Below are positions 1,998 through 25,353 of a stretch of DNA of 33,408 bases, piece after piece; position 1 is the stretch's first letter; each line of letters starts with the position of its first letter. A program made the translations under genes and the position numbers. This DNA comes from Pelomyxa schiedti (taxonomy: Eukaryota > Protista > Evosea): contig JAHLWZ010000983.1 in assembly GCA_020536535.1 (NCBI GenBank), positions 1-33,408 of the forward strand, written 5' to 3'. The notes beneath the pieces are model-generated. The model was not told where the DNA came from. It ran no database searches and saw nothing but the letters and a program-made list of their open reading frames with translations.

Positions 1998-3379
1998 TTA
2001 GTAAGTGGAACTGAACTTATATAAGACAAAAGGGTTTCTAATACACAAGCCAGTGTCAGCTGCACAGGCTTTAGAGCGCTGTCCCACTGATGGCCCAGTC
2101 TCACAAGGAGTGGACTGGTTGGGAGTGAGAGCTTCATGTAACTGTTGTAACAGATTTGTGTTGCTTACTGTAGCGGTTCGCATATCTTGGTCTGGCTGGG
2201 TGGTGGGCACTTGTTTGCGGATTTGCAGTCCAACCGAAGGTGGAGTCGTTGTCTGAGGTTTGGGTATCTGGCCTGTCTGTGGTTTTGTGTTACTGGTTGG
2301 TGGCCGTTTAATGGGTGATTGCACTGAGGTGATGGGCGAATACCCTTGGCACCAACCAACCATTTTTTTCCGTGATTGAGGCGGCACCCGGCTCACCAGC
2401 CTTTGTTGAGGGCTAGCGTGATGTCCTTCAACCAACAGAGGAAGTGCAGAACTAGAAGCTGAACCCATAGTGGGAGCCGAACTGGAAGTGGAAGCGGAAG
2501 TGGAAGTTGAAGCGGAAGCAGTACCGGCAGCGAAAGTGGGAGCAGAAACCGGAGTGGAAATGGGAGTGTGAGGGGGAGTGGATGTGGATGTGGATGTGGA
2601 TGTGGATGTGGATGTGGATGTGGATGTGGATGTGGATGTACGGGGCCGCTTTGCAAGAGGTGCACAGGGAACATCGTTGGTCCCTGTAACAGCAGGGATT
2701 TGCTGAACAGCGGGAATGCCAAATTGGTGCAGTGCCTCACCCTCATCAGGAAAAGGAGGATCCGTCACTGTAGTGGACAGTGACATAAATTAAAGTGGGC
2801 AAAAAAAAAAAAAAAAAAAAAAGCCCGACCTAAATACAGTTCTGTCCTATAGCAAATTCCGTCAAGTGTCAAATAAAGCCCAAGCACCAAGCTTCCCTCA
2901 CTCCTCCTTGGTCGTGTACCGCACGGCCTTTCTTCAATCGTGGATTCATTTACCAAGAAGAAATTTCCAGTTCCTAGGGGAACTCCATCTTCCAAAGCCA
3001 TGCACTCACCCAGAGTCTCCAGTGTTGGATTACGGCGGTATGACGGAATAATGACATATCCGTTGGCTAGTTTCAAGGCCTTGAATGGCCTTGTTGCATC
3101 GTAGTCGGGACTGTTGCGGAATTCCAGGACTTTGGTGGCTGGCAGGCAATAGAACCGCGTGTTTTGTTCTTCGGGAACATAGATGCGGCGTATCGTGTCT
3201 CTTTCGGGAACGTCGAGGTCTGCCGTCAAGGCGTGGGTGTATCGGACAATGTCCTCCTCATCGGGGAGTTTTTCCCAGGTCCTGATGAGCTTGTCTAGTT
3301 TAGAGGGAGTGAATCCAGCTCTGTGCATTTGCTCTTTTATGCCCATTTTATGGGCACGGGGGTACTTGTTTCCTGGCAT
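1998..3379 (-). CDS. Hypothetical protein: N-terminal globular region plus S/T/P-rich low-complexity C-terminus
   Basis: ORFs 3379-2765 and 2786-1998 join in frame through a phase-1 GT-AG intron at 2829-2768 (gtcggg...poly-T...ctacag). No family recognised. A further 3' exon near 1720-1960 is possible. Confidence 0.6.
2578..2637. repeat. (GTGGAT)10 microsatellite encoding a poly-(Ser-Thr) tract on the minus strand
   Basis: Ten perfect hexamer copies read directly from the sequence. Confidence 0.95.
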
Positions 3380-3742
3380 CTCGGATTGTCAGTCTTGGGG
3401 ATGGTTTTGTTGGTTAGTGTGTCGTCCGGCTGACGTTGTTTCGCGCGACGCGGCTTGTTGTAATGAGGGAAAAAAAAAATCCTGTTGGTTCCTTAAAAGG
3501 TGAACGCTGGCGGACAAGTTGTACGAAAATCGCTTCCTGTTGTGGGCTCTTTCAGAGAAGAGGTCTTATTCCAGTACGCTTGCACCGACTTGGTTAACAG
3601 TACCTGGGCTAGTGTGGAACGAAAGGGCAAATTTTGCTTTCAGGAACCGAACAGCTCCTCGGGTGTTGTCTCACGGGACTTGGAGCATGATGATCAATCT
3701 GCTTCGTTAATTTGTCTCCCCGAGTACCACAAACAAAGACAC

Positions 3743-6700
3743 ATGTCGTACCGCAGGAAGAAGAAGATCGGGCCCGACACGTACAACAGCTACTTCGACC
3801 TCCACGAGTTGTTCTTCGGCCGGCGCCTGTCCGACAAGCGCGGCGCGTCCCTCATCGACATAGTGGAGCGCGACTTCGACCCGGCGTTCGTCGCCTTCAG
3901 CGTCGCCGCGGCCCCTGTGAACAACCGCGGCATGCGCGTGTCGTCCCGCGCCCCCGACGACCTCACGTACGAGATGTACCCCTTCATGCGCGCCCTCGTG
4001 CCCCGCTGCCTCACCTTCGTGTGCGCCCCGGCAGATCGCGTGTGCCGCGCCCGCGGCATCGCCCCGTCCGACGTCGTCGCCATCAGCGGCGTCGGCGGCG
4101 GCGCCAGGGGCCGCTCGTCCACAAAGGACCCCCACAGTGGCGACGACGATGATGATGAGTGTGTCACGAATGTGGCGACTGCAGCGGCGACGATTGCTCA
4201 TTGTGGGACCGGGACCGGGACCGGGACTGGGAGTGGTAGGGCTGCTGATGTTGTTGGTGTTGGTGTTGTTGTTGATGATGATGATTCTGCTGATGGTGTT
4301 GACACTGAGGTGCAGAAGACTAGTGCAACAACTTTTGGATGTGCTACTGAGAGTGGGAGTGGTACGAGCTCTGCTGCCGCCAGCGCGACGTCACCTGCTA
4401 CAGCTTCGAGCTCTGCGGCGTCTGATCAAGCTGACCACAAGCTACCACGTGGCAAAAAGGGCAAACAGGCTGCCAAACAAGCGGCTTCGACTGCTCCAAA
4501 GACAGCCTACACGCTGACAATATCGGCTCCTCCAAGCTCCGCTACTGAGAAACACACAAAACAGTCAATAGCAGAAGGTGGCAAACCGTCGAGTTCAATA
4601 CGTTCGGCAAGGGGTTTGATGGTTGTTGGTAAGGTTCAGGGAATGCCAAAATTCACCGGACTCAGTACTGATGAGGAAGGCAAGTATGAAGTGTTGAGAT
4701 GAGAAGTCTCACATGAAATAGATGAATCAGAGACACCCAACAAACGAAGTGTCAATCACATGTGCAATCGGCAACTTATCCAAAGAGCTTCTCATTTCCT
4801 TGTTACCACAAAAGCCAATGGGAAAGCTGCTGTGATAACCGCCTTTGAGTTCGAGGGGAAATTATACTACATTTTGGGTTCCAAGAATGTGCATGTTGTA
4901 GTCAGTGCTTCAGATCTATCTAAGATGACTGCTCATGTAAAAAAAAATATTCCACCTCAGCAGAGTTATGTTTTCTGAACACGCTTAGGTTCCAGCGGAA
5001 AATAAGTTGGCTGTTGGAATAAGCCAAGTTATCACACGTCATTTCCTTCAATTAGAGAATGGCCAGCTCCATGTCTCTCCTCATACAAGTGTATTGTCAA
5101 TCTAACTCTCTTTCCAGAAGCTTAACAGACTCCTCCTTACACACACGTTATGTGGGGAGTATGAAGATGGAGAACACATTGTGCCACATCCAGGTTCACC
5201 AGGTAGCCTCTGATTAGCACCTTGTTTTAAGTGGCTATTTACCTCTCTGGCAGGGATCAGTTGGTTCGCCTTAGTACCAAAGCAAGGTGATATTCCTGGT
5301 GAATCCTGTGATCGATTATCTGCACTTGAGACTCTGAAATCCTTTGGGTTACCAACCGTGAATTTTGCCCTGCACCCAAAATCCGATCTATTGCAAGAAT
5401 TTGTAAGATTACGGCGAACACCTCACATGGAGGGTGCTGTATGATTTTATGGACTCTGTGAAGCTTTAAGAGACACCAACCAGGTAATTGACTTCATGGT
5501 AAGCAAACCAGATGGTGGATATTCAGTAGTCGAAACTGTCAAATTTAAGAGTGTTTGGTATTAATCTTCAGTTGGATTTTCTTCCGCCTACAACCTATTA
5601 GGTATGTGCTAACGAGATCTGTCCGAGAGATACTACGTTTCACATTAGCACCCTTCAAAACAAAGGTACACAATAGGCCACCCATTGTTTTACTGACTGC
5701 TTTTCTTAGTCTATGTCAAAAGAAGCACAGATTTCGGAGGTGATGCAACGCATCAATAAAACTATCAAAGCACGCTCTAGTGATTTCCTCCATTTGTCGG
5801 TACTGAGGTGCCATTCTGCTAGCAGACTTACCTTTCTTAGCCGGAAACTGTGGAGTCTTATCTGGACTTATACCGAGCATTCGTTTCATGGTTCATACGC
5901 AAGAGATATGACGGGAGCACGATTAACAGAGATGGCACCTTCCTACCTAGTTCCAATAAACCTCTAACATTTCGGTCAGGACTGGCTGTCCACTGGTCCG
6001 AATTCCTACAGGTGCTATTGAATCGTTTTGTTATCCCAATTGATGGTACTTTAGGAAACAAAAATAAGCGATGTCATTGATTCGGTGGAGGTACTATGAC
6101 CGCTCTTCTCGTCATAGTTTTAGTCTCAACAGGTGGACACCCAAGAGCTTATTCGAGATATTGACCCAGCAAGCATCCCCACTGTGGAAGTCCATGAAGT
6201 AGCTACAACAACAGCCACTACATCAACGACCACGTCATCAACAGCCGCAGCAGAAACCGTGCCGCCTTCTGAACTATCATCAAAGTTAGAGGCAAGTCAT
6301 AAACCAACTGAGGAAATCCCCACACAAACTGAGAGCAGTTTCCTCGCTGACATTCATGTTGAAGAAGGAAAACCGCCTTCTAACACCACACCACCGCCAA
6401 GTGACCCTAAGAAATCTGCTGGAGCTGCAGCAAGGAAAGAAAAGGCTTCCTCAAAAAAACATAAATTATCTCTTCCTGTAGTGCCACCACGCCTTGTTGT
6501 CTTAACTCATGGAATACCAGGTATTCCTTCCACCTGTAGAATAGTTTCCTCATTACCCATCTTTTTAGCTGATGGGAAAAGCACCAGAGCGCAGTTCATA
6601 TCTAAAGAACTACAAAAACGTGGTATACAGTCCCAGGTCATTGAGCAAGACCAATTTGGGGGTGACGCCACACAAACTTTGCATAGTTTCTCTGAAATCC

Positions 6701-16580: not shown

Positions 16581-17540
16581 TTAAATTCTCTGTACTGCAA
16601 TATTTCTAATCCGTCTCTTGCTTTTCTGGGGGTACCAGAGGTGTTGGCCAAGCAAAACAGAGTCCACCACAAACTGAACAACACCACAGAATTTGAATTG
16701 CGCGGGGGAATTCCACAAGAAGAAGTATGCACACTTGAGGACGTCTGCACAAAGCCAGAGGAGAATGAGAGATAGTGCGAGTCCCTTTATCTGGTGTTGT
16801 GCATTGTGGTATATCTATTTATCACAGTTAGAGGCATGCGGGTATTCGAAAAAAAGGGAGGGTGCTGGGTTTTTAACCTGAGGGGCGCCTATCAAAGCTT
16901 CTATTGAAGCTCCAAGAAAGCCAATTGCCTGAACAAGGGAGTGCACTGGGCTCATAAGAGTGATACTGAGAAGGCAAAATACAGCAATGCAAAAGAAGGA
17001 AAACAAGTAGTGAGAGTAGTGGTCCCAGTCCCAAAACTGTCCCACAATTTCCTTGTAGCTAGGCACCCACGGCACAGCCTCCTCAGACGGCGGCCCGACT
17101 CCCCCGACAGCCTCCCCAGCCTCAGCCCTGACGTCGATCTCTTGTTGCAGTTGCGACGTCTGTTGCAGTTGCTGCTGCGAGCCGGAACTTTGCAGTTGCA
17201 TTTGCGGCTTTTCGGCCGAGTGGGGCGACGACCGGGGGATGATGCCACCGCCGGTTGATCCAGCGGCAACAGGGCGACGGTACAGCACGCAGACGTAGAC
17301 GACGGCGAGCTGCACGACGACCATGACGACGCTCTGGGCCACGAGGGGCACGCCGATGCCGTCGAGGGAGACGAGGGCGTAGCACAGCCTGAGGGTGTTG
17401 GCGACGAGGAGGGCCAGGCACACGAACATGCTGAAGCCCTCTGAGTCCTGCCGGCGGTACATGTCGTTGAGCTGGGGGACCCAGCACAGAGGGGGGCCCA
17501 GTACTACGGCCAGGCCCACTGCCAATCCTCCCACACCCAT
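16581..17540 (-). CDS. PQ-loop repeat membrane protein (PQLC1/SLC66A2-like)
   Basis: First PQ motif WVPQ...SEGFS; QSVVM; FWDW; second PQ motif GAPQ|IYHN across an intron (~16877-16815); last exon WLCADVLK...SPAQFKFCGVVQFVVD...GQ. Confidence 0.85.
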
Positions 17541-17864
17541 CTTTACGATGACTGTCTCGAGAAGGAGAAAGAAACTTTTGCTTCGGTGAACGGCCCTTCG
17601 CGGGGCAGATCGGCGAAGCACAACAGGTAGGGTTCCGACAGGGGTTGGTTCTTATGGGTTACAGCTGCCGTTCTTGCACTCTTTTAGTTCCTGGCTTTCA
17701 GTGCTTGAGTGCTCTACTCAAGCACTTTTTTTAGATGAGATCCCGGTTGCTTGTGCATTTAAACCTGATGGTTCAACGAACAATTTTGATTGCGTGAAAA
17801 ATCGATTTAATGGATATTGGGGATCTGGGATTCAAATTGTACACACAAGTCGGCCGGTTGAAGA

Positions 17865-20800
17865 ATGCTTCACCAATACACAAACCAGCGTATCGTGCTC
17901 CCCGAAAGAAACACCGATGCTCCAACACGGCGGAGACAGTCACCCCTTGTTTTACTGTCTCAAGATCCATTGCTGAAGGCTGTACTGGAGTACATCGATT
18001 CTCACTCCTTTTCGTGCAGGCTCCCCCGTGCTCGCTGCATCTCTCCCTCCAATTCCCGTACCAAGGCATTTGACGACACCATCACTGCAGGCAAGTTCTG
18101 CGAACTAATTCGAAGATGGCTTTCGAAGAACTACACCGAGGCCGGAGACAACAGCCAACGAGAGACCCTTCGTAGAAGATTGGAAGGACATGAAACAGGC
18201 AGCTTGATCGTACTCGTGTGCCTTTTGGTGCCCCAAGCGGAGGGCTCTTATGCCGTGTCGTTCGCCGCGATTATGCCTATTCACTATTCGGAGTTTTACT
18301 GTAACGCATGCATGAAGGTTTGAAAACTAAAGCTGAAACTTAAACACACACTCTCTTGCGGCCTCGTTACTTACTCTTGTTTTTTGCTTTGTTTAGATAC
18401 CAGGCTCACTGGCTATTATCAGACCGATAGAATCCGTGGTTCGGCAACTGTGGTTATTATCCGAGTACGAAGGACATCTTTCCTTTGGGAATCGCAGTGC
18501 TCAGAATACAGCCGTGGTGCCATCGCATCCATCCGGCGATTTCACTTGGTTTCCAGCTCTGGCATTTTTTTCAGCTGAACATCCTTCTGTTCCCCGCTTT
18601 CCGTTTACTTCGACAGAAGAGCGCCACATAGTACTACATGAATGGTCTGGGTCTCTACGAACGTGCAGTCCTCTTCAGTTTCTACATCAAATGTTTGAAG
18701 CCCAAGTTCACTCTCAGCCTCATTCCGACGCACTTGCCTTTGGGAAAGATGAGTCTTGTCCTCGCTGGACATATATGCAAGTGGACAAGTATGCAGAACA
18801 AATAAGCAATCACCTGAGGACAATGGGGGTACATCGGAACACCGTGGTGGGGGTGAACATCGAGAACAGCGCTGAATATATATTTGCTTTCTTGGGTATA
18901 CTCAAAGCCGGTGGCGCTTTTATGCCGCTTTCCAGTCGTTGGCCACAAGATAGAATACAAACGATAATTAATACTGCTCAGTGTTCGATCATTATCTGTT
19001 CTTCAAATACTCCATCATTTTATACTTTACTTGGTTGCTCTCTGGTCTATTTGCCTCTTGCTAGTGATTTGGTCCCTTTAGCTCCTACATGCTACGATAT
19101 TCCATGTGGACATGATTTAGCTTATGTGATCTGTACATCTGGCAGTACTGGAACGCCAAAGCTAGTTGGTGTTACTCATATGGGTGCTGCAAACGTAGTA
19201 GAGTGCTTGGCCAATGGTCACGATTACTGCCACTCCCGTGTGGTGCAAGCCTACAGTACTGTATTTGATTCCTCTGTGGCGGCAATATTCTCGGTACTAT
19301 CCTTCGGCGGGTTTCTTGTCATACCCCCAGCAGACGTTAACATGGATGTCAAGCTGCTTGAGAGTATGCTAATCGTACACAGAATCACTCACACGTCGTT
19401 TGTTCCCTCTGTGTTGAGTGAATTCTGCCAGCAATGTAAGTTTCCGGACACAGTTTGTCTTGTTGAAGTTGGAGGAGAGACTTTGACACATCACCACCTG
19501 AAAAAAATTGCTGCCGCTTCCAACCCTGCAAGACTTGACAAAATTATTGTGTCAAACAGTTATGGACCAACAGAAGTCACCATAGCATGCACCGAGTATC
19601 GAGGTACTCTACTGCAGCTTCTTCAAAGCCCTGCAACTGAAGTGCCAATTGGAAAGCCCAACTACACACATACTTGCTTTGTGTTAGATCCAGGTATGAA
19701 CATTGTTCCTGTTGGATTCCCAGGCGAACTGTGGGTTGGAGGACCATACCTTGCTCAAGGTTACATTAGCAACCCAGAAGAGACAGCAAAACAGTATCGT
19801 CCAAATCCTTTTGGGGAAGGCAGATTGTATAAAACAGGTGACTTAGTGCGATGGCTTCCTTCTGGAAATATGGTTTTTCTAGGACGTGTTGACTCCCAAG
19901 TCAAGCTCAATGGTCTGCGCATCGAACTTGGCGAGATAGAGTCCGTGGCTCGAGAATGTCCTGGAGTTCAGGAAGTTGTTCTGGCTGTGAGAAACTCGCA
20001 GCTTGTGTGTTATGTGACTTCAAACCGACCTGGCGTGGCGTCTAATCTGGAAAAACTGTTTGGCACCAAGTTGCCACAGTACATGCTTCCAAGACATATC
20101 ATAGTGCTTGACCATTTTCCCCTTACTGTAAATGGAAAGCTTGACACCAAAGCTCTTCCCGACCCCTTCTCCAACAACAACGCCGTGTTGGCAGCTGAAG
20201 AACAACCAAGTTCTGAAACAGAAATAAAGCTAGCGGGTATTTGGGAGAAAGTACTACCAGGCAGACCTGGCTCATTGAAGTTTGGGAAGTCGTCCAGCTT
20301 CTTCGCCATGGGAGGTCATTCACTGCTTGCGGTATCACTTGCACGGACCATCAGCAAGGAGTTCAACCTTGATGAATTTCCTGTGCGGCTTGTTTTCGAG
20401 CACGCCACACTTAAGGATATGGCTTCCTGCATCATAAGTCTGACCGAGGAAAAGAAAACCTCTTACCCAAGGTTCTCAGAGCCCCATGCAAAACTTCCAC
20501 ACATAGTTTGCCTACGCGGGGGAATGACTGTTTACTTTAATAGGGTACGACAAGAGCTTGCTAAATTTGCAGATGTTGAGGTTCCCAAGTATCCAGAAGA
20601 AATTAAAAGCTTTGAAGATTGTGCAGAAGCAGTATTTCAGGGACTGAAAAATAAGGCGGTTGACGTTTTGGTTGGATTTTGTGCTGGTTGCTTCATGGCA
20701 ATGGCACTGGCCAAGCTTCTTATTGCTTCCGGAAATATGCCCAAAGTGATGATAGCCATTGACCCAGAGAGAAACCTGGACGGCGATGACGGAGTGAACA

Positions 20801-21285
20801 GGGACAAAACCGACTTTTTTTCCTACTATGCCTGCTCCAAGTCCAGTGTAAAGCAGTGTTATATATCACTAGCGAAGCTACTGCACATTTCCCTTGGCGA
20901 AGGTGAAGATGCCCAGAGTTTTTCCGTGCAAGACCGGATGCTTGCGGCATTGACATCCCTTCCTGAGGAGCAGTACATCCCTACTCTCTTGGAAGCTACT
21001 GGAGACTCAATGGATAACAAAGACAACCTGGAGGCAATATTCCGGAGTTTCTGCAGCGTGTCCAGAGCATTGGTTAGGTACAATCCAAGTAAGACAGCCA
21101 AAGTGCTAGCTGGTAGGACCATACTCGTGTATGCTTCAGACTATTCACTGGAACATGTATCCTGGTGGGACCAGTACCTGGTTAAGGAGAACCTTTCCTT
21201 CCCGGAGATACACCACCGCGCCATTGTCGAATACAAAAAGACAACTGAACTTCTCAAGGAATGCCTGGAATCCATCCAAAATTGA
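17865..21285 (+). CDS. Stand-alone NRPS-like enzyme: unknown N-terminal region - adenylation - peptidyl carrier - thioesterase (Cys nucleophile)
   Basis: A-domain motifs LKAGGAFMP, TSGSTGTPK, FDSS, NSYGPTE, GELWVGG..LAQGY, YKTGDL, GRVDSQVKLNGLRIELGEIE, LPQYMLP and NGKLD. PCP motif FFAMGGHSLL (Ser codon 20320). TE motifs VGFCAG, IAID and EIHH. Exon 17865-18317 joins 18397-21285 in frame via GT-AG intron 18318-18396. The 5' start is uncertain. Confidence 0.92.
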
Positions 21286-21416
21286 ACACAGTTCATCCGT
21301 CATGCAAAATGTATTTTACTTAAATTATAAAAATAAACTGTTTCCACTCCCAAACAATGTTTGTTGTGGAGCTTAGCTTCACCTTTTTTATTGTGTTTCT
21401 TTCTATGTGGCCAACT

Positions 21417-22428
21417 CTAGTGGCCCATTGGAATGTGCTTGACAAAATTGTGTGCGCCAAGGTGAGCCAATGTGGTCTGATGGTCATCATCACTCTTCAG
21501 GTTCCACCTGGACTCGCGGAACAGCGTGGGATCCACATGGCAGCCGGCCGAGTGCCCAATGATCATGACAGTCCCCGAAGCCCCAGGGACTTCCAAGTCG
21601 GTCTCCAGCGCCATTTCTATGCTTGCCAGCGACTTGCTGAGCAGCAGCGCGGGGCTTCCGGGCAGCCACGTGCAGGGGCGTGCTGCGCCGAGCTGCGGGA
21701 GAGTGTCGGGGAGTGCCATTTTGTCGGTGGCGGAGCCGGAGCAGGAGCCCGCGGCCACGACGGAGGCTAGGGCGGAGGCTGGGGGAACGTTGATGACCAG
21801 CTGCTTGGTGTCCCGTATGCACTTGAGTGTGTGCGATGCGGAGCCAAGAACTACGGCAATTCGATCCTATGATTTTCTTATAGTGAGTAAGGTGCCTCGC
21901 TACCGTTTAGTTAATGGCGGTCCATCTATATATAGATATATATATTAGTTAGTTAGTTTGGTGCCAGTGCTATGAAAGTATTGACCAACTATACTATACT
22001 CAACATGTAGGGCTTGTCCACCCGTAAGTCAATCAAATGGGTACCTTTGCCACTGGGGTTGTCCACTGAGCAGCCATAAACGTGGTCCTATTAGCCTGGG
22101 CGTCAAAAGCAGTCACCAACACCGTGGGGCTCTGAGCCAATACTCTGCTGGCCAAATCAGCAGCCACACTCTGCGTAGCCACAACATCCGCAGTTGCTGG
22201 TGTACCTGTCACTGCAACTGCAACTGTCATTGGCATTGGTGATGAGGAGGCTGTCGTGCATTGATGAGCCTGAGCCTGAGAGACTGGGTCAGTTTGGTCG
22301 TGGGCACCATGGGCATTTGGTGTTGCGCACTCCATTGCGACAGGAAGAGCGAGAACAAACGTGGAAGTGAGCACGAGCAGCAACGAAAACGACAAACCTA
22401 ACACAACGGTACTACCGACCTGCTGCAT
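21417..22428 (-). CDS. Flavin reductase-like / flavoredoxin-family FMN-binding protein with N-terminal hydrophobic leader
   Basis: Joining exons across intron 22044-21867 gives SPTVLVTA...FMAAQWTTPVAK|DRIAVVLGSASHTLKCIRDTKQLVINVP...AGSCSGSATDKM...MIIGH, the flavoredoxin pattern (PxxLVt, W, HT, vNvP, GxxSGxxxDK). The start is adjacent to an N gap. Confidence 0.78.
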
Positions 22429-22446
22429 TATTATGGGTCTGCTCCC

Positions 22447-22546
22447 NNNNNNNNNNNNNNNNNNNNNNNNNNNNNNNNNNNNNNNNNNNNNNNNNNNNNN
22501 NNNNNNNNNNNNNNNNNNNNNNNNNNNNNNNNNNNNNNNNNNNNNN
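22447..22546. other. Assembly gap (100 N)
   Basis: Run of N between the divergent starts of the flavoredoxin-like and DUF4139 genes. Confidence 0.99.
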
Positions 22547-24869: not shown

Positions 24870-25132
24870 TGTGACTTAAACTCTTGCCCTGTTTAGGGCA
24901 GAGGCAGTTACAATTAATAAATGATCATTCGACGATAGAAGCTATCTGTGGAGTGATCACCTTAGCTGAGACATGCCCTTTCGTTCACAGCCTGCTCACT
25001 GCCCTTGAACCTAGGTGTAAAGGGAAAGGCAGGTGAAGTCTCAGGGAGGGTGACCATTCTAAAAGAATCCAGGCAACGCCAGAGCACTCCCCTGGAAGGC
25101 TTGTAACTATTGAAAACTTAAGAAAAAATCGA
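24870..25132 (+). ncRNA. Candidate structured non-coding RNA (unassigned)
   Basis: Several helices, some with G.U pairs that favour the + strand. TATA-like TTATATAAAA about 25-30 nt upstream and a T-run downstream. No known RNA family recognised. Confidence 0.35.
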
Positions 25133-25353
25133 NNNNNNNNNNNNNNNNNNNNNNNNNNNNNNNNNNNNNNNNNNNNNNNNNNNNNNNNNNNNNNNNNNNN
25201 NNNNNNNNNNNNNNNNNNNNNNNNNNNNNNNNTAGGTGTAAAGGGAAAGGCAGGTGAAGTCTCAGGGAGGGTGACCATTCTAAAAGAATCCAGGCAACGC
25301 CAGAGCACTCCCCTGGAAGGCTTGTAACTATTGAAAACTTAAGAAAAAATCGA
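25012..25353. repeat. 121-bp exact direct duplication flanking a 100-N gap (25012-25132 = 25233-25353); likely unmerged contig overlap
   Basis: Identical sequence immediately either side of N run 25133-25232. Confidence 0.85.

Follow-up and report, generated by a model that had tools for sequence, protein, structure and literature searches.

A two-exon NRPS-like gene of Pelomyxa schiedti with a cysteine-type thioesterase domain and no detectable condensation domain

Analysis of a 33,408-nt stretch of Pelomyxa schiedti DNA (contig JAHLWZ010000983.1, assembly GCA_020536535.1; hereafter the window) revealed a two-exon gene encoding a 1113-residue enzyme that resembles nonribosomal peptide synthetases (NRPS) and combines adenylation (A), peptidyl carrier (PCP or T) and thioesterase (TE) domains. 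We consider it reasonably probable that this nuclear gene is a derived member, devoid of a condensation (C) domain, of an old protist family of terminal A-T-TE modules in which the thioesterase carries a cysteine. Since this family is very small and has so far been found only in a few protists, the gene appears to be more than a freshly borrowed bacterial one. The features on which the analysis is based are the following:

17865-18317, + strand: exon 1, an ORF of 151 codons starting from the ATG at 17865, with a GT donor at 18318
18318-18396, + strand: intron, phase 0, read directly as AAG/GTTTGA ... TTGTTTAG/ATA
18397-21285, + strand: exon 2, 962 codons and a TGA stop codon, carrying the linker relic, A, PCP and TE
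18586-18708, + strand: C-A interdomain linker relic, aa 215-255 (C-domain profile, pairwise alignments, checked in the translation)
18694-20139, + strand: adenylation domain, aa 251-732 (Pfam, TIGR01733, bacterial NRPS structures at up to 501 bits)
20230-20433, + strand: peptidyl carrier domain, aa 763-830 (Pfam PP-binding, PF00550, E 1e-9)
20518-21264, + strand: thioesterase-fold domain, aa 859-1107 (Pfam PF00975, 31-36 bits; cut-off 26.4)
21332-21337, + strand: AATAAA, 47 nt past the stop codon, read directly; a possible polyadenylation signal
16581-17540, - strand: left neighbour, a two-exon PQ-loop membrane protein (Pfam PQ-loop, E 3e-6), head-to-head with the gene at a distance of 325 bp
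21417-22428, - strand: right neighbour, a two-exon flavin-reductase-like protein (Pfam Flavin_Reduct, 27.2 bits against a cut-off of 27), tail-to-tail with the gene

Both exons lie on the plus strand and are joined across one 79-nt GT-AG intron, a splice predicted from the genomic sequence and the NCBI model. They map onto a 100% identical 1113-aa NCBI protein of P. schiedti annotated as "non-ribosomal peptide synthetase" (P0001). Exon 1 corresponds to its residues 1-151, the N-terminal part of a 214-residue region without detectable relatives, and the translation of exon 2, whose frame extends upstream without a stop codon as far as the AG acceptor at 18396/18397, is 100% identical to residues 152-1113. 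Whole-protein analyses used either this model or exon 2 alone. The original prediction described a single 2.9-kb exon; the A-PCP-TE portion is indeed contained in one open exon, but there is an additional 5' exon and the gene is therefore not single-exon. The GC content of the gene (~0.47) is close to the window average (~0.46).

Adenylation and carrier domains and the N-terminal region

Pfam recognises, within a single open frame (18436-21285), the domains AMP-binding (E 2e-56), AMP-binding_C and PP-binding together with Thioesterase (E 3e-7, which passes the gathering threshold). With 338.3 bits, the protein also exceeds the 317.4-bit cut-off of TIGR01733, the NCBIfam model for amino-acid adenylation domains. 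The translation displays the A-domain motifs LKAGGAF, YVICTSGSTGTPK, FDSS, NSYGPTE and GELWVGG, followed by YKTGD, GRVDSQVKLNG, LPQYMLP and NGKLD, and the carrier domain contains GGHSL (20311-20325), including the phosphopantetheine-attachment residue Ser793 (codon 20320-20322). Pfam, TIGR01733 and reading of the translation thus confirm the A-domain core motifs, the carrier motif and the TE that had been assigned to this exon. On alignment columns that give textbook codes in bacterial rows, the specificity residues of the A domain read DSASEGSIAK. Asp442 and Lys732, the equivalents of Asp235 and Lys517 responsible for α-amino and carboxylate binding, are both kept, and their retention points to an amino-acid substrate. 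Pocket position 299 is occupied by Asp or Glu in all five family members and in none of the 70 bacterial rows; an acidic residue at this position suggests a substrate with a polar or basic side chain.

Immediately upstream, a segment likened at the outset to the C-A linker of multimodular synthetases proved to be real. It aligns to the C-A linker of elongation modules from McyB, Txo1 and Txo2, and a C-domain profile built from 91 C-domain-plus-linker segments (510 positions) matches the protein, with filters off, at aa 215-255 only, that is, over profile positions 470-510. The homology break falls precisely where a C domain would end, in line with the proposal of a terminal-module-type A-T-TE without a C domain. 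Indeed, Pfam, the dedicated profile and hhalign give no signal of a C domain upstream of the A domain: residues 1-250 have no Pfam match even at E up to 10, phmmer matches to solved structures start from residue 215 only, and the hhalign score of residues 1-214 for a condensation domain is no better than that of 20 shuffles. With the start codon of the left neighbour lying just 325 bp from exon 1, there is no room upstream for a C domain. Single-sequence AlphaFold2 modelling of the N-terminal 214 residues returned a pLDDT of 31. A language-model search links these residues weakly to condensation-domain fragments (0.85-0.89, below trust level), and they may therefore include a degenerate C-domain relic. 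The linker was also taken to be a trace of C-domain loss; however, it gives no date for that loss, as the same linker also stands at the N-terminus of bacterial stand-alone A-T-TE proteins.

The cysteine thioesterase and product release

Type I thioesterases are characterized by a Ser-Asp-His triad with the nucleophile in a GxSxG motif. In the Pelomyxa TE, this motif reads GFCAG (20674-20688), with Cys913 (codon 20680-20682) in place of the usual Ser as nucleophile, and Asp940 sits 27 residues after it. His1090 and His1091 are candidates for the triad histidine; this HH pair is not aligned with the His of three distant relatives, and the model is poor in that region. Among 1.84 billion representative proteins the TE has only four relatives, all with Cys, namely a paralogue in Pelomyxa itself, the C-A-T-TE module that terminates a PKS-NRPS transcript from Mastigella eilhardi, and two other contigs; no bacterial relative was found in this set at E 0.001. 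The Cys is kept in all six family rows of the TE alignment.

Although the domain is very divergent in sequence, its AlphaFold2 model adopts a TE fold (Z 13-16 to the TEs TesA, AB3403, Pks13, RifR and Vlm2), with five helices inserted between two strands. As a single sequence, the TE has no significant match to solved structures, and the family profile gives marginal matches only, the best being the Cys-type TE of FluC (E 3e-5). Structural ranking does not separate TE subtypes: ObiF1 (Z 13.4) is no better than Ser-type TEs, and NcmC ranks 28 in Foldseek, lies outside the top 50 by Z and has a profile E of 0.22. The known Cys-type TEs (FluC, ObiF, SulM and TrdC/NcmC) and that of Pelomyxa have in common GxCxG replacing GxSxG, their sequence similarity being marginal. 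FluC is a TE forming the fluvirucin macrolactam, with Cys2243 and Asp2270 (bioRxiv 10.1101/2024.06.20.599880), and the spacing of 27 residues between Cys and Asp is the same in FluC, BpdE and the Pelomyxa TE (bioRxiv 10.1101/2024.06.20.599880; PMC10956176); the helical lid of the latter is ~50 residues longer than that of FluC. The Cys-TEs of ObiF and SulM produce a β-lactone (PMC6668435) and a β-lactam (PMC11298585), respectively, and have their Asp on the following strand (position II), whereas that of Pelomyxa is at the canonical +27 position; in addition, SulM has Gln-Cys-Asn where Pelomyxa has Phe-Cys-Ala (PMC11298585). Enzymes of the TrdC/NcmC type are Cys Dieckmann cyclases with a Cys-Asp-His triad and a four-helix bundle subdomain (PMC10956176); they share the Cys and the Asp at +27 with the Pelomyxa TE, yet NcmC is not among its best structural matches.

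In the mechanism that we propose, an Sfp-type transferase would prime Ser793, and the genome search for such an enzyme recommended with the original prediction retrieved a PF01648 match above cut-off on contig C561, interrupted in a manner suggesting an intron. The A domain would then adenylate an α-amino acid and load the carrier, and Cys913 would take the acyl group as a thioester. By analogy with known Cys-type thioesterases, release is expected to be cyclising or aminolytic rather than plain hydrolysis, and formation of a peptide or acyl-amide bond would require a condensation domain from another protein. The indigoidine synthetases BpsA and IndC (A-Ox-T-TE) are C-less one-module NRPSs in which a TE of the Ser type cyclises a single loaded amino acid. 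Likened by description only, they offer a precedent for such an autonomous mechanism, with the difference that the Pelomyxa A domain contains no oxidation domain. Among eukaryotes, the fungal non-reducing NRPS-like A-T-TE enzymes (TdiA, atromentin and polyporic-acid synthetases) are likewise C-less and make their product through the TE (PMC9047271). Compared here by domain order and substrate type, they share the domain order of the Pelomyxa protein and activate aromatic α-keto acids, whereas the Pelomyxa A domain keeps the α-amino-binding Asp442 and passes the amino-acid adenylation model.

A possible alternative, to which we give limited credence, is that the protein serves as the non-autonomous last module of a split assembly line, the C domain being provided in trans, the N-terminal 214 residues acting in docking and the Cys-TE carrying out the cyclisation (e.g., of the Dieckmann or lactam type). 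The relatives occur as the last modules of larger synthetases, matches to condensation domains (at least 36) and ketosynthases (at least 39) are spread over ~20 contigs of the P. schiedti genome, and a split A-T plus C-A-T plus trans cyclase arrangement is known from tetramate pathways (PMC10956176). However, no partner can be named and the 33-kb window contains no other NRPS or PKS gene; furthermore, no docking motif is recognisable, and the NcmC-type cyclases fall outside the best structural matches.

Relatives and origin of the gene

Mastigella eilhardi, which like Pelomyxa belongs to the pelomyxid Archamoebae, possesses a terminal module (EukProt EP01105; P0123, P0125) that aligns collinearly with the Pelomyxa protein from the linker into the TE (388 bits, 33% identity). 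Like the Pelomyxa gene, it displays the Cys nucleophile and the acidic position 299 and falls into the same A-domain clade. The Mastigella module keeps its C domain and stands at the end of a PKS-NRPS of 3671-4460 aa, whereas Pelomyxa has the unrelated 214-residue N-terminus. Because the two family members with known upstream sequence keep the C domain, it was, most simply, lost or replaced inside the Pelomyxa lineage. The nearest relatives, namely the Mastigella module and P0124, are of the C-A-T-TE type, and loss or replacement is therefore the economical reading; the earlier suggestion of C-domain loss holds to this extent, with no date to be had from the linker relic.

Identity between family members is 33-37%. 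In unrooted A-domain trees, computed by quick searches over the family and bacterial NRPS rows, the family was grouped at 100% SH-aLRT under two bacterial samplings, and no bacterial sister or donor clade appeared in three samplings. The gene is located on a long branch together with three other protist-like sequences, and the tree program cautioned about long branches coming together. The nesting within bacterial NRPSs that had been put forward as a check on horizontal transfer was thus not obtained. The named database matches are all bacterial (best identity 33-37%), and no fungal sequences are among the matches listed, so that the idea of horizontal acquisition retains the bacterial character of its matches and lacks a donor clade in the trees. 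The family is old and its ultimate ancestry probably bacterial, although the trees name no donor. Given the lack of a bacterial donor clade, the many NRPS and PKS genes of this genome and the sharing of the family with another pelomyxid, any transfer was old and probably involved a larger synthetase rather than this stand-alone gene.

The original prediction, taken literally, would mean that Pelomyxa recently received a complete stand-alone A-T-TE gene directly from a bacterium, which is unlikely. Bacterial proteins of this kind do exist in Nostoc, Fischerella and metagenomic data (~880-920 aa); they have the same domain order and the same N-terminal linker, and are 36-37% identical to the Pelomyxa protein over A-T. 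Every named match is bacterial, and the gene contains a single intron, whereas genes of this genome have 7.43 on average (PMC8887013). Nevertheless, these bacterial rows group apart from the Pelomyxa family, possess neither the 214-residue extension nor an intron, and yielded no match at E 0.001 to the Pelomyxa TE, the nearest named kin of which is the Mastigella transcript with its C domain. Bacterial identity is 33-37% at best, the composition of the gene is like that of its host, and the gene has both an intron and a diverged paralogue. This paralogue (C198), of the kind that the original prediction suggested looking for, is 89% identical, but its A-T linker has lost 96 nt and its frame is broken there; the dN/dS ratios between the two copies are 0.22 (A), 0.25 (PCP) and 0.44 (TE), at a dS of 0.31.

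We also doubt that the gene is a decaying, functionless remnant of a larger synthetase. Its C domain is gone and the C198 sister copy is disrupted as described above, but the 1113-codon frame is intact, the catalytic motifs are all retained, dN/dS amounts to 0.22-0.44, and the Cys with an Asp 27 residues on is kept in P0001, in the C198 copy and in the Mastigella module.

Genomic integration and biological significance

The gene is joined without N to both neighbours, each of which has a GT-AG intron that was read directly (left neighbour: exons 17540-16878 and 16814-16581, intron 16877-16815; right neighbour: exons 22428-22045 and 21866-21417, intron 22044-21867). A 100-N scaffold gap is found at 22447-22546, 1.2 kb downstream of the gene and just past the start codon of the right neighbour. 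Contigs from four DNA runs of one study (Logan) span 16600-18820 and 19948-22446, bridging both flanks, and cross the intron of the gene unspliced; they therefore represent DNA. These contigs break up within the central part of the A domain, which is explained by the 89%-identical paralogue. The integration of the gene, as originally claimed, is accordingly supported, both by the gap-free connection to spliced genes on either side and by the contigs bridging the two flanks. That the gene derives from a bacterial contaminant or a chimeric assembly is highly improbable: although the assembly was obtained from amplified single cells bearing bacterial symbionts (PMC8887013, PMC10579272), contains the N gap and is matched by Logan contigs broken in the middle of the A domain, each of the four runs independently connects the gene with its spliced eukaryotic neighbours at either end, the gene carries its own intron, a homologous module is present in the Mastigella transcriptome, and the paralogue explains the fragmentation. 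A vertically inherited enzyme of the Lys2, Ebony or AASDH type, which would likewise begin with A-T, is ruled out by domain architecture and scores, as the Lys2 model TIGR03443 gives 162 bits where its cut-off demands 1030, the C-terminal domain is a TE instead of a reductase, Ebony C-terminal or PQQ-repeat domain, and the best matches are NRPS elongation modules.

Going beyond this preferred reading, we tentatively suggest that the A-T-TE(Cys) architecture with an acidic pocket may define a protist-specific lineage of termination modules, within which one Pelomyxa copy would have gained a new N-terminal domain and come to act autonomously without a C domain. This lineage might, just as speculatively, be common to pelomyxids and one or more organisms in which TAG may be a sense codon, and its product could conceivably be a so far unknown small molecule such as a cyclised basic amino acid.

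NRPS and PKS genes are unmentioned in two Pelomyxa papers and in the Mastigamoeba genome paper, and a literature search combining Archamoebae with nonribosomal peptides gave no match. Within that literature secondary metabolism is thus undescribed in Archamoebae, even though condensation and ketosynthase domains occur by the dozen in this genome. Into this repertoire, the gene described here offers the simplest entry point: its product is one protein of 1113 residues, amenable to expression and assay, and carries a release domain of a rare Cys type for which public data contain hardly any relatives. For the study of gene transfer, it illustrates that a bacterial-looking and intron-poor gene need not be a recent acquisition. 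If active, the enzyme would reveal the product of a C-less protist NRPS and would add an independent lineage to the few Cys-thioesterases, with relevance to lactam, lactone and tetramate chemistry. Should the more tentative reading of a protist-specific lineage hold true, the molecule could matter in the obligate consortium that the amoeba forms with bacteria and a methanogen.

Gene model and genomic setting

An open frame at 18436-21285 on the forward strand is twice as long as any other in the window and remains open upstream to 18397, immediately 3' of a TTGTTTAG acceptor. The first ATG of this frame lies only well within the adenylation (A) domain. Upstream, an ORF that begins with ATG at 17865 runs to a phase-0 GT donor (18318) and is in frame with 18397 across a predicted 79-nt intron. 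The NCBI protein "non-ribosomal peptide synthetase [Pelomyxa schiedti]" (1113 aa), to which both exons map, is exactly the joined product; this record, or exon 2, served as the query in whole-protein searches. The features discussed below are:

17865-18317, forward strand: exon 1
18397-21285, forward strand: exon 2
20311-20325, forward strand: carrier motif GGHSL, read in the translation
20674-20688, forward strand: thioesterase motif GFCAG, read in the translation, with Cys at the usual Ser position
17540-16581, reverse strand: left neighbour, a PQ-loop membrane protein gene with one GT-AG intron
22428-21417, reverse strand: right neighbour, a flavin-reductase-like gene interrupted by one GT-AG intron of 178 nt

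Pfam detects AMP-binding (E 2e-56), AMP-binding_C, PP-binding and Thioesterase, all above the gathering score, TIGR01733 (NCBIfam amino-acid adenylation) reaches 338 bits, above its cut-off of 317, and all ten adenylation core motifs are legible in the translation. The A, carrier (PCP or T) and thioesterase (TE) domains are thus confined to one 2889-nt exon, as originally noted, but the predicted gene itself has two exons rather than one.

The proposed gap-free continuity with intron-bearing genes on both sides was borne out: no N separates the gene from either neighbour. Both 16600-18820 and 19948-22446 are spanned, with no joints, by Logan contigs from four runs of a single study; since these contigs retain the intron, they represent DNA. 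In all four runs the central part of the A domain falls into short contigs, which fits the existence of an 89%-identical paralogue. Given these contigs, the spliced neighbours, the N-free joins, an exon GC of ~0.47 equal to that of the window, and an AATAAA 47 nt past the stop codon, contamination or chimerism is very unlikely. A 100-N scaffold gap lies at 22447-22546, just past the start codon of the flavin-reductase-like gene, in an assembly scaffolded using RNA read pairs (PMC8887013). Beyond 22446, contigs from all four DNA runs go on in three differing sequences, and this place may therefore be variable or repetitive. Contigs from two of these runs also show seven clustered base differences at 19413-19492, which are either alleles or paralogue reads placed on this copy.

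The PQ-loop gene is divergently oriented, its start codon 325 bp from that of the synthetase, and the flavin-reductase-like gene, whose product has a hydrophobic N-terminus, ends 131 bp past the synthetase gene. Both neighbours are possible candidates for a functional link.

Paralogue, condensation domain and relatives

The genome search for paralogues revealed a dispersed copy on contig C198 of the Pelomyxa assembly (L013, G000:C198:1-2710), with a DNA identity of 84-89% over a segment that starts exactly at residue 208 and extends to the stop codon; outside this segment there is no similarity, and the two flanking genes are not shared. The copy has lost 96 nt and its frame is broken in the linker between A and carrier, and NCBI annotates only its final 177 residues (Pelo_2549). 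A 512-nt contig (C5220; L005) reads through the broken part in one frame, which points to a third copy or else to a faulty assembly. Between the gene and its paralogue, dN/dS is 0.22 for A, 0.25 for PCP and 0.44 for TE (dS 0.31), and the sequence has therefore been under purifying selection.

Residues 215-255 align with the linker between condensation (C) and A domains of the McyB, Txo1 and Txo2 elongation modules, in line with the resemblance first noted. A profile of C domain plus linker from 91 elongation modules (510 positions), run with all filters off, matches only these residues, at profile positions 470-510. For residues 1-214, Pfam gave no match at E up to 10, hhalign scored no better than 20 shuffled versions, and structure prediction yielded no confident fold (pLDDT 31); a language-model search pointed weakly to condensation-domain fragments (0.85-0.89, by the tool's own calibration a lead only), with few features in common. 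With these null searches, and with only 325 bp separating exon 1 from the adjacent gene, the locus truly lacks a C domain. The linker alone gives no date for the loss, because stand-alone A-T-TE proteins of bacteria (~900 aa; Nostoc, Fischerella and others) begin with this linker too.

Over A-T, the top non-self matches are bacterial modules (31-37% identity), and all named matches are bacterial. Lys2, Ebony and AASDH types, grouping with which had been raised as a possible refutation, are excluded by domain architecture and model scores. The TE, by contrast with these A-T matches, has only four matches at E <=0.001 among 1.84 billion representative proteins, all with Cys at the nucleophile position:

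Pelomyxa paralogue tail: 76% identity
Mastigella eilhardi EukProt transcript: 3671-4460-aa PKS-NRPS hybrid with a C-A-T-TE end
15.7-kb Logan contig, source unassigned: 1318-aa C-A-T-TE
2.4-kb Logan contig: TE continuing an A-T reading frame

Between the Mastigella module and the Pelomyxa protein, a single alignment block (388 bits) extends from the linker as far as residue 1047. The 15.7-kb contig also encodes a papain-type peptidase. The 2.4-kb Logan contig (SRR15311596; L031) has a continuous A-T-TE frame at 2-1969 whose sole breaks are in-frame TAG codons at 1016-1018 and 1073-1075; the source organism may use TAG as a sense codon, or else the gene is newly broken.

Family members were found through the TE, so that their A domains played no part in the search. 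In A-domain trees from two different bacterial samplings, one of which takes in bacterial A-T-TE proteins, all five group together with 100% SH-aLRT, under a tool warning of long branches; the unique TE and an acidic pocket residue back this grouping independently. Ten other sampled Pelomyxa A domains form a separate clade. The expected nesting inside bacterial synthetases was not recovered, and the family has no bacterial sister clade in these trees. On general grounds its bacterial ancestry is nevertheless likely: the named matches are all bacterial, there are few introns, and the family has a narrow taxonomic range. What survives of the proposed horizontal acquisition of a terminal module is this likely ancestry; that a bacterial A-T-TE gene was taken up ready-made and recently is unlikely.

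Adenylation pocket and thioesterase

The ten specificity positions were set by motif anchors, and the columns were verified on bacterial rows, which give textbook specificity codes, among them DAFWLGGTFK, DAWTIAAVCK, DILQLGMIWK and DVGEVGSIDK. The Pelomyxa code, identical in the paralogue, is DSASEGSIAK, and the closest bacterial code shares six of ten positions. Because the equivalents of Asp235 and Lys517 are retained, an alpha-amino acid is the expected substrate. All five family members have Glu or Asp at position 299, where none of the 70 bacterial rows has either; we infer, tentatively, a polar or basic substrate side chain.

The predicted TE model (six-row alignment, pLDDT 63) has a TE fold and matches TesA, AB3403, Pks13, RifR, Vlm2 and many PKS/NRPS TEs at Z 13-16, a comparison that does not discriminate among TE subtypes. 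Asp940 follows Cys913 by 27 residues, the canonical spacing and the same as that of Cys2243/Asp2270 in the Cys-type TE of FluC (bioRxiv 10.1101/2024.06.20.599880), the top solved match to the TE family profile (E 3e-5). The triad histidine is uncertain: HH at 1090-1091 is present in both Pelomyxa copies and is not aligned with the His of distant relatives. The known Cys-thioesterases all perform cyclising release, namely of a macrolactam (FluC; bioRxiv 10.1101/2024.06.20.599880), a beta-lactone (ObiF; PMC6668435) or a beta-lactam (SulM; PMC11298585), or by Dieckmann condensation (TrdC/NcmC-type enzymes; PMC10956176).

Biosynthetic complement and possible role

Condensation domains are matched at least 36 times in the assembly, on ~20 contigs, alongside 39 ketosynthase matches and many A domains, with open frames of 2399-2545 aa; some A domains are spread over several frames, which suggests introns. 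No mention of NRPS or PKS genes was found in the papers on Pelomyxa and Mastigamoeba that were examined, genome papers among them. The contigs concerned include C424, C753, C1181, C151, C123, C318, C259, C48, C150, C2062, C1508, C1291 and others, and many matches lie at contig ends. The 8.2-kb contig C1326 carries near-identical inverted A-domain matches (2206-3642, reverse strand; 4607-6043, forward strand), an arrangement produced either by palindromic duplication or by chimera formation during amplification.

The search for an Sfp-type phosphopantetheinyl transferase, suggested with the original prediction, yielded a candidate on C561 (PF01648 above cut-off), with an interruption resembling an intron and motifs that we take to be Sfp-type. 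The match occurs twice, 3.6 kb apart (21307-21441 and 24953-25231; L011, L012); the sequence downstream is partly the same at both places and a run of N lies close by, so that scaffolding may have created the duplicate.

We read the gene as a derived member, without a C domain, of an old protist family of termination modules. Its enzyme may serve as the terminal module in a split assembly line, or it may alone cyclise or transfer a single loaded amino acid.
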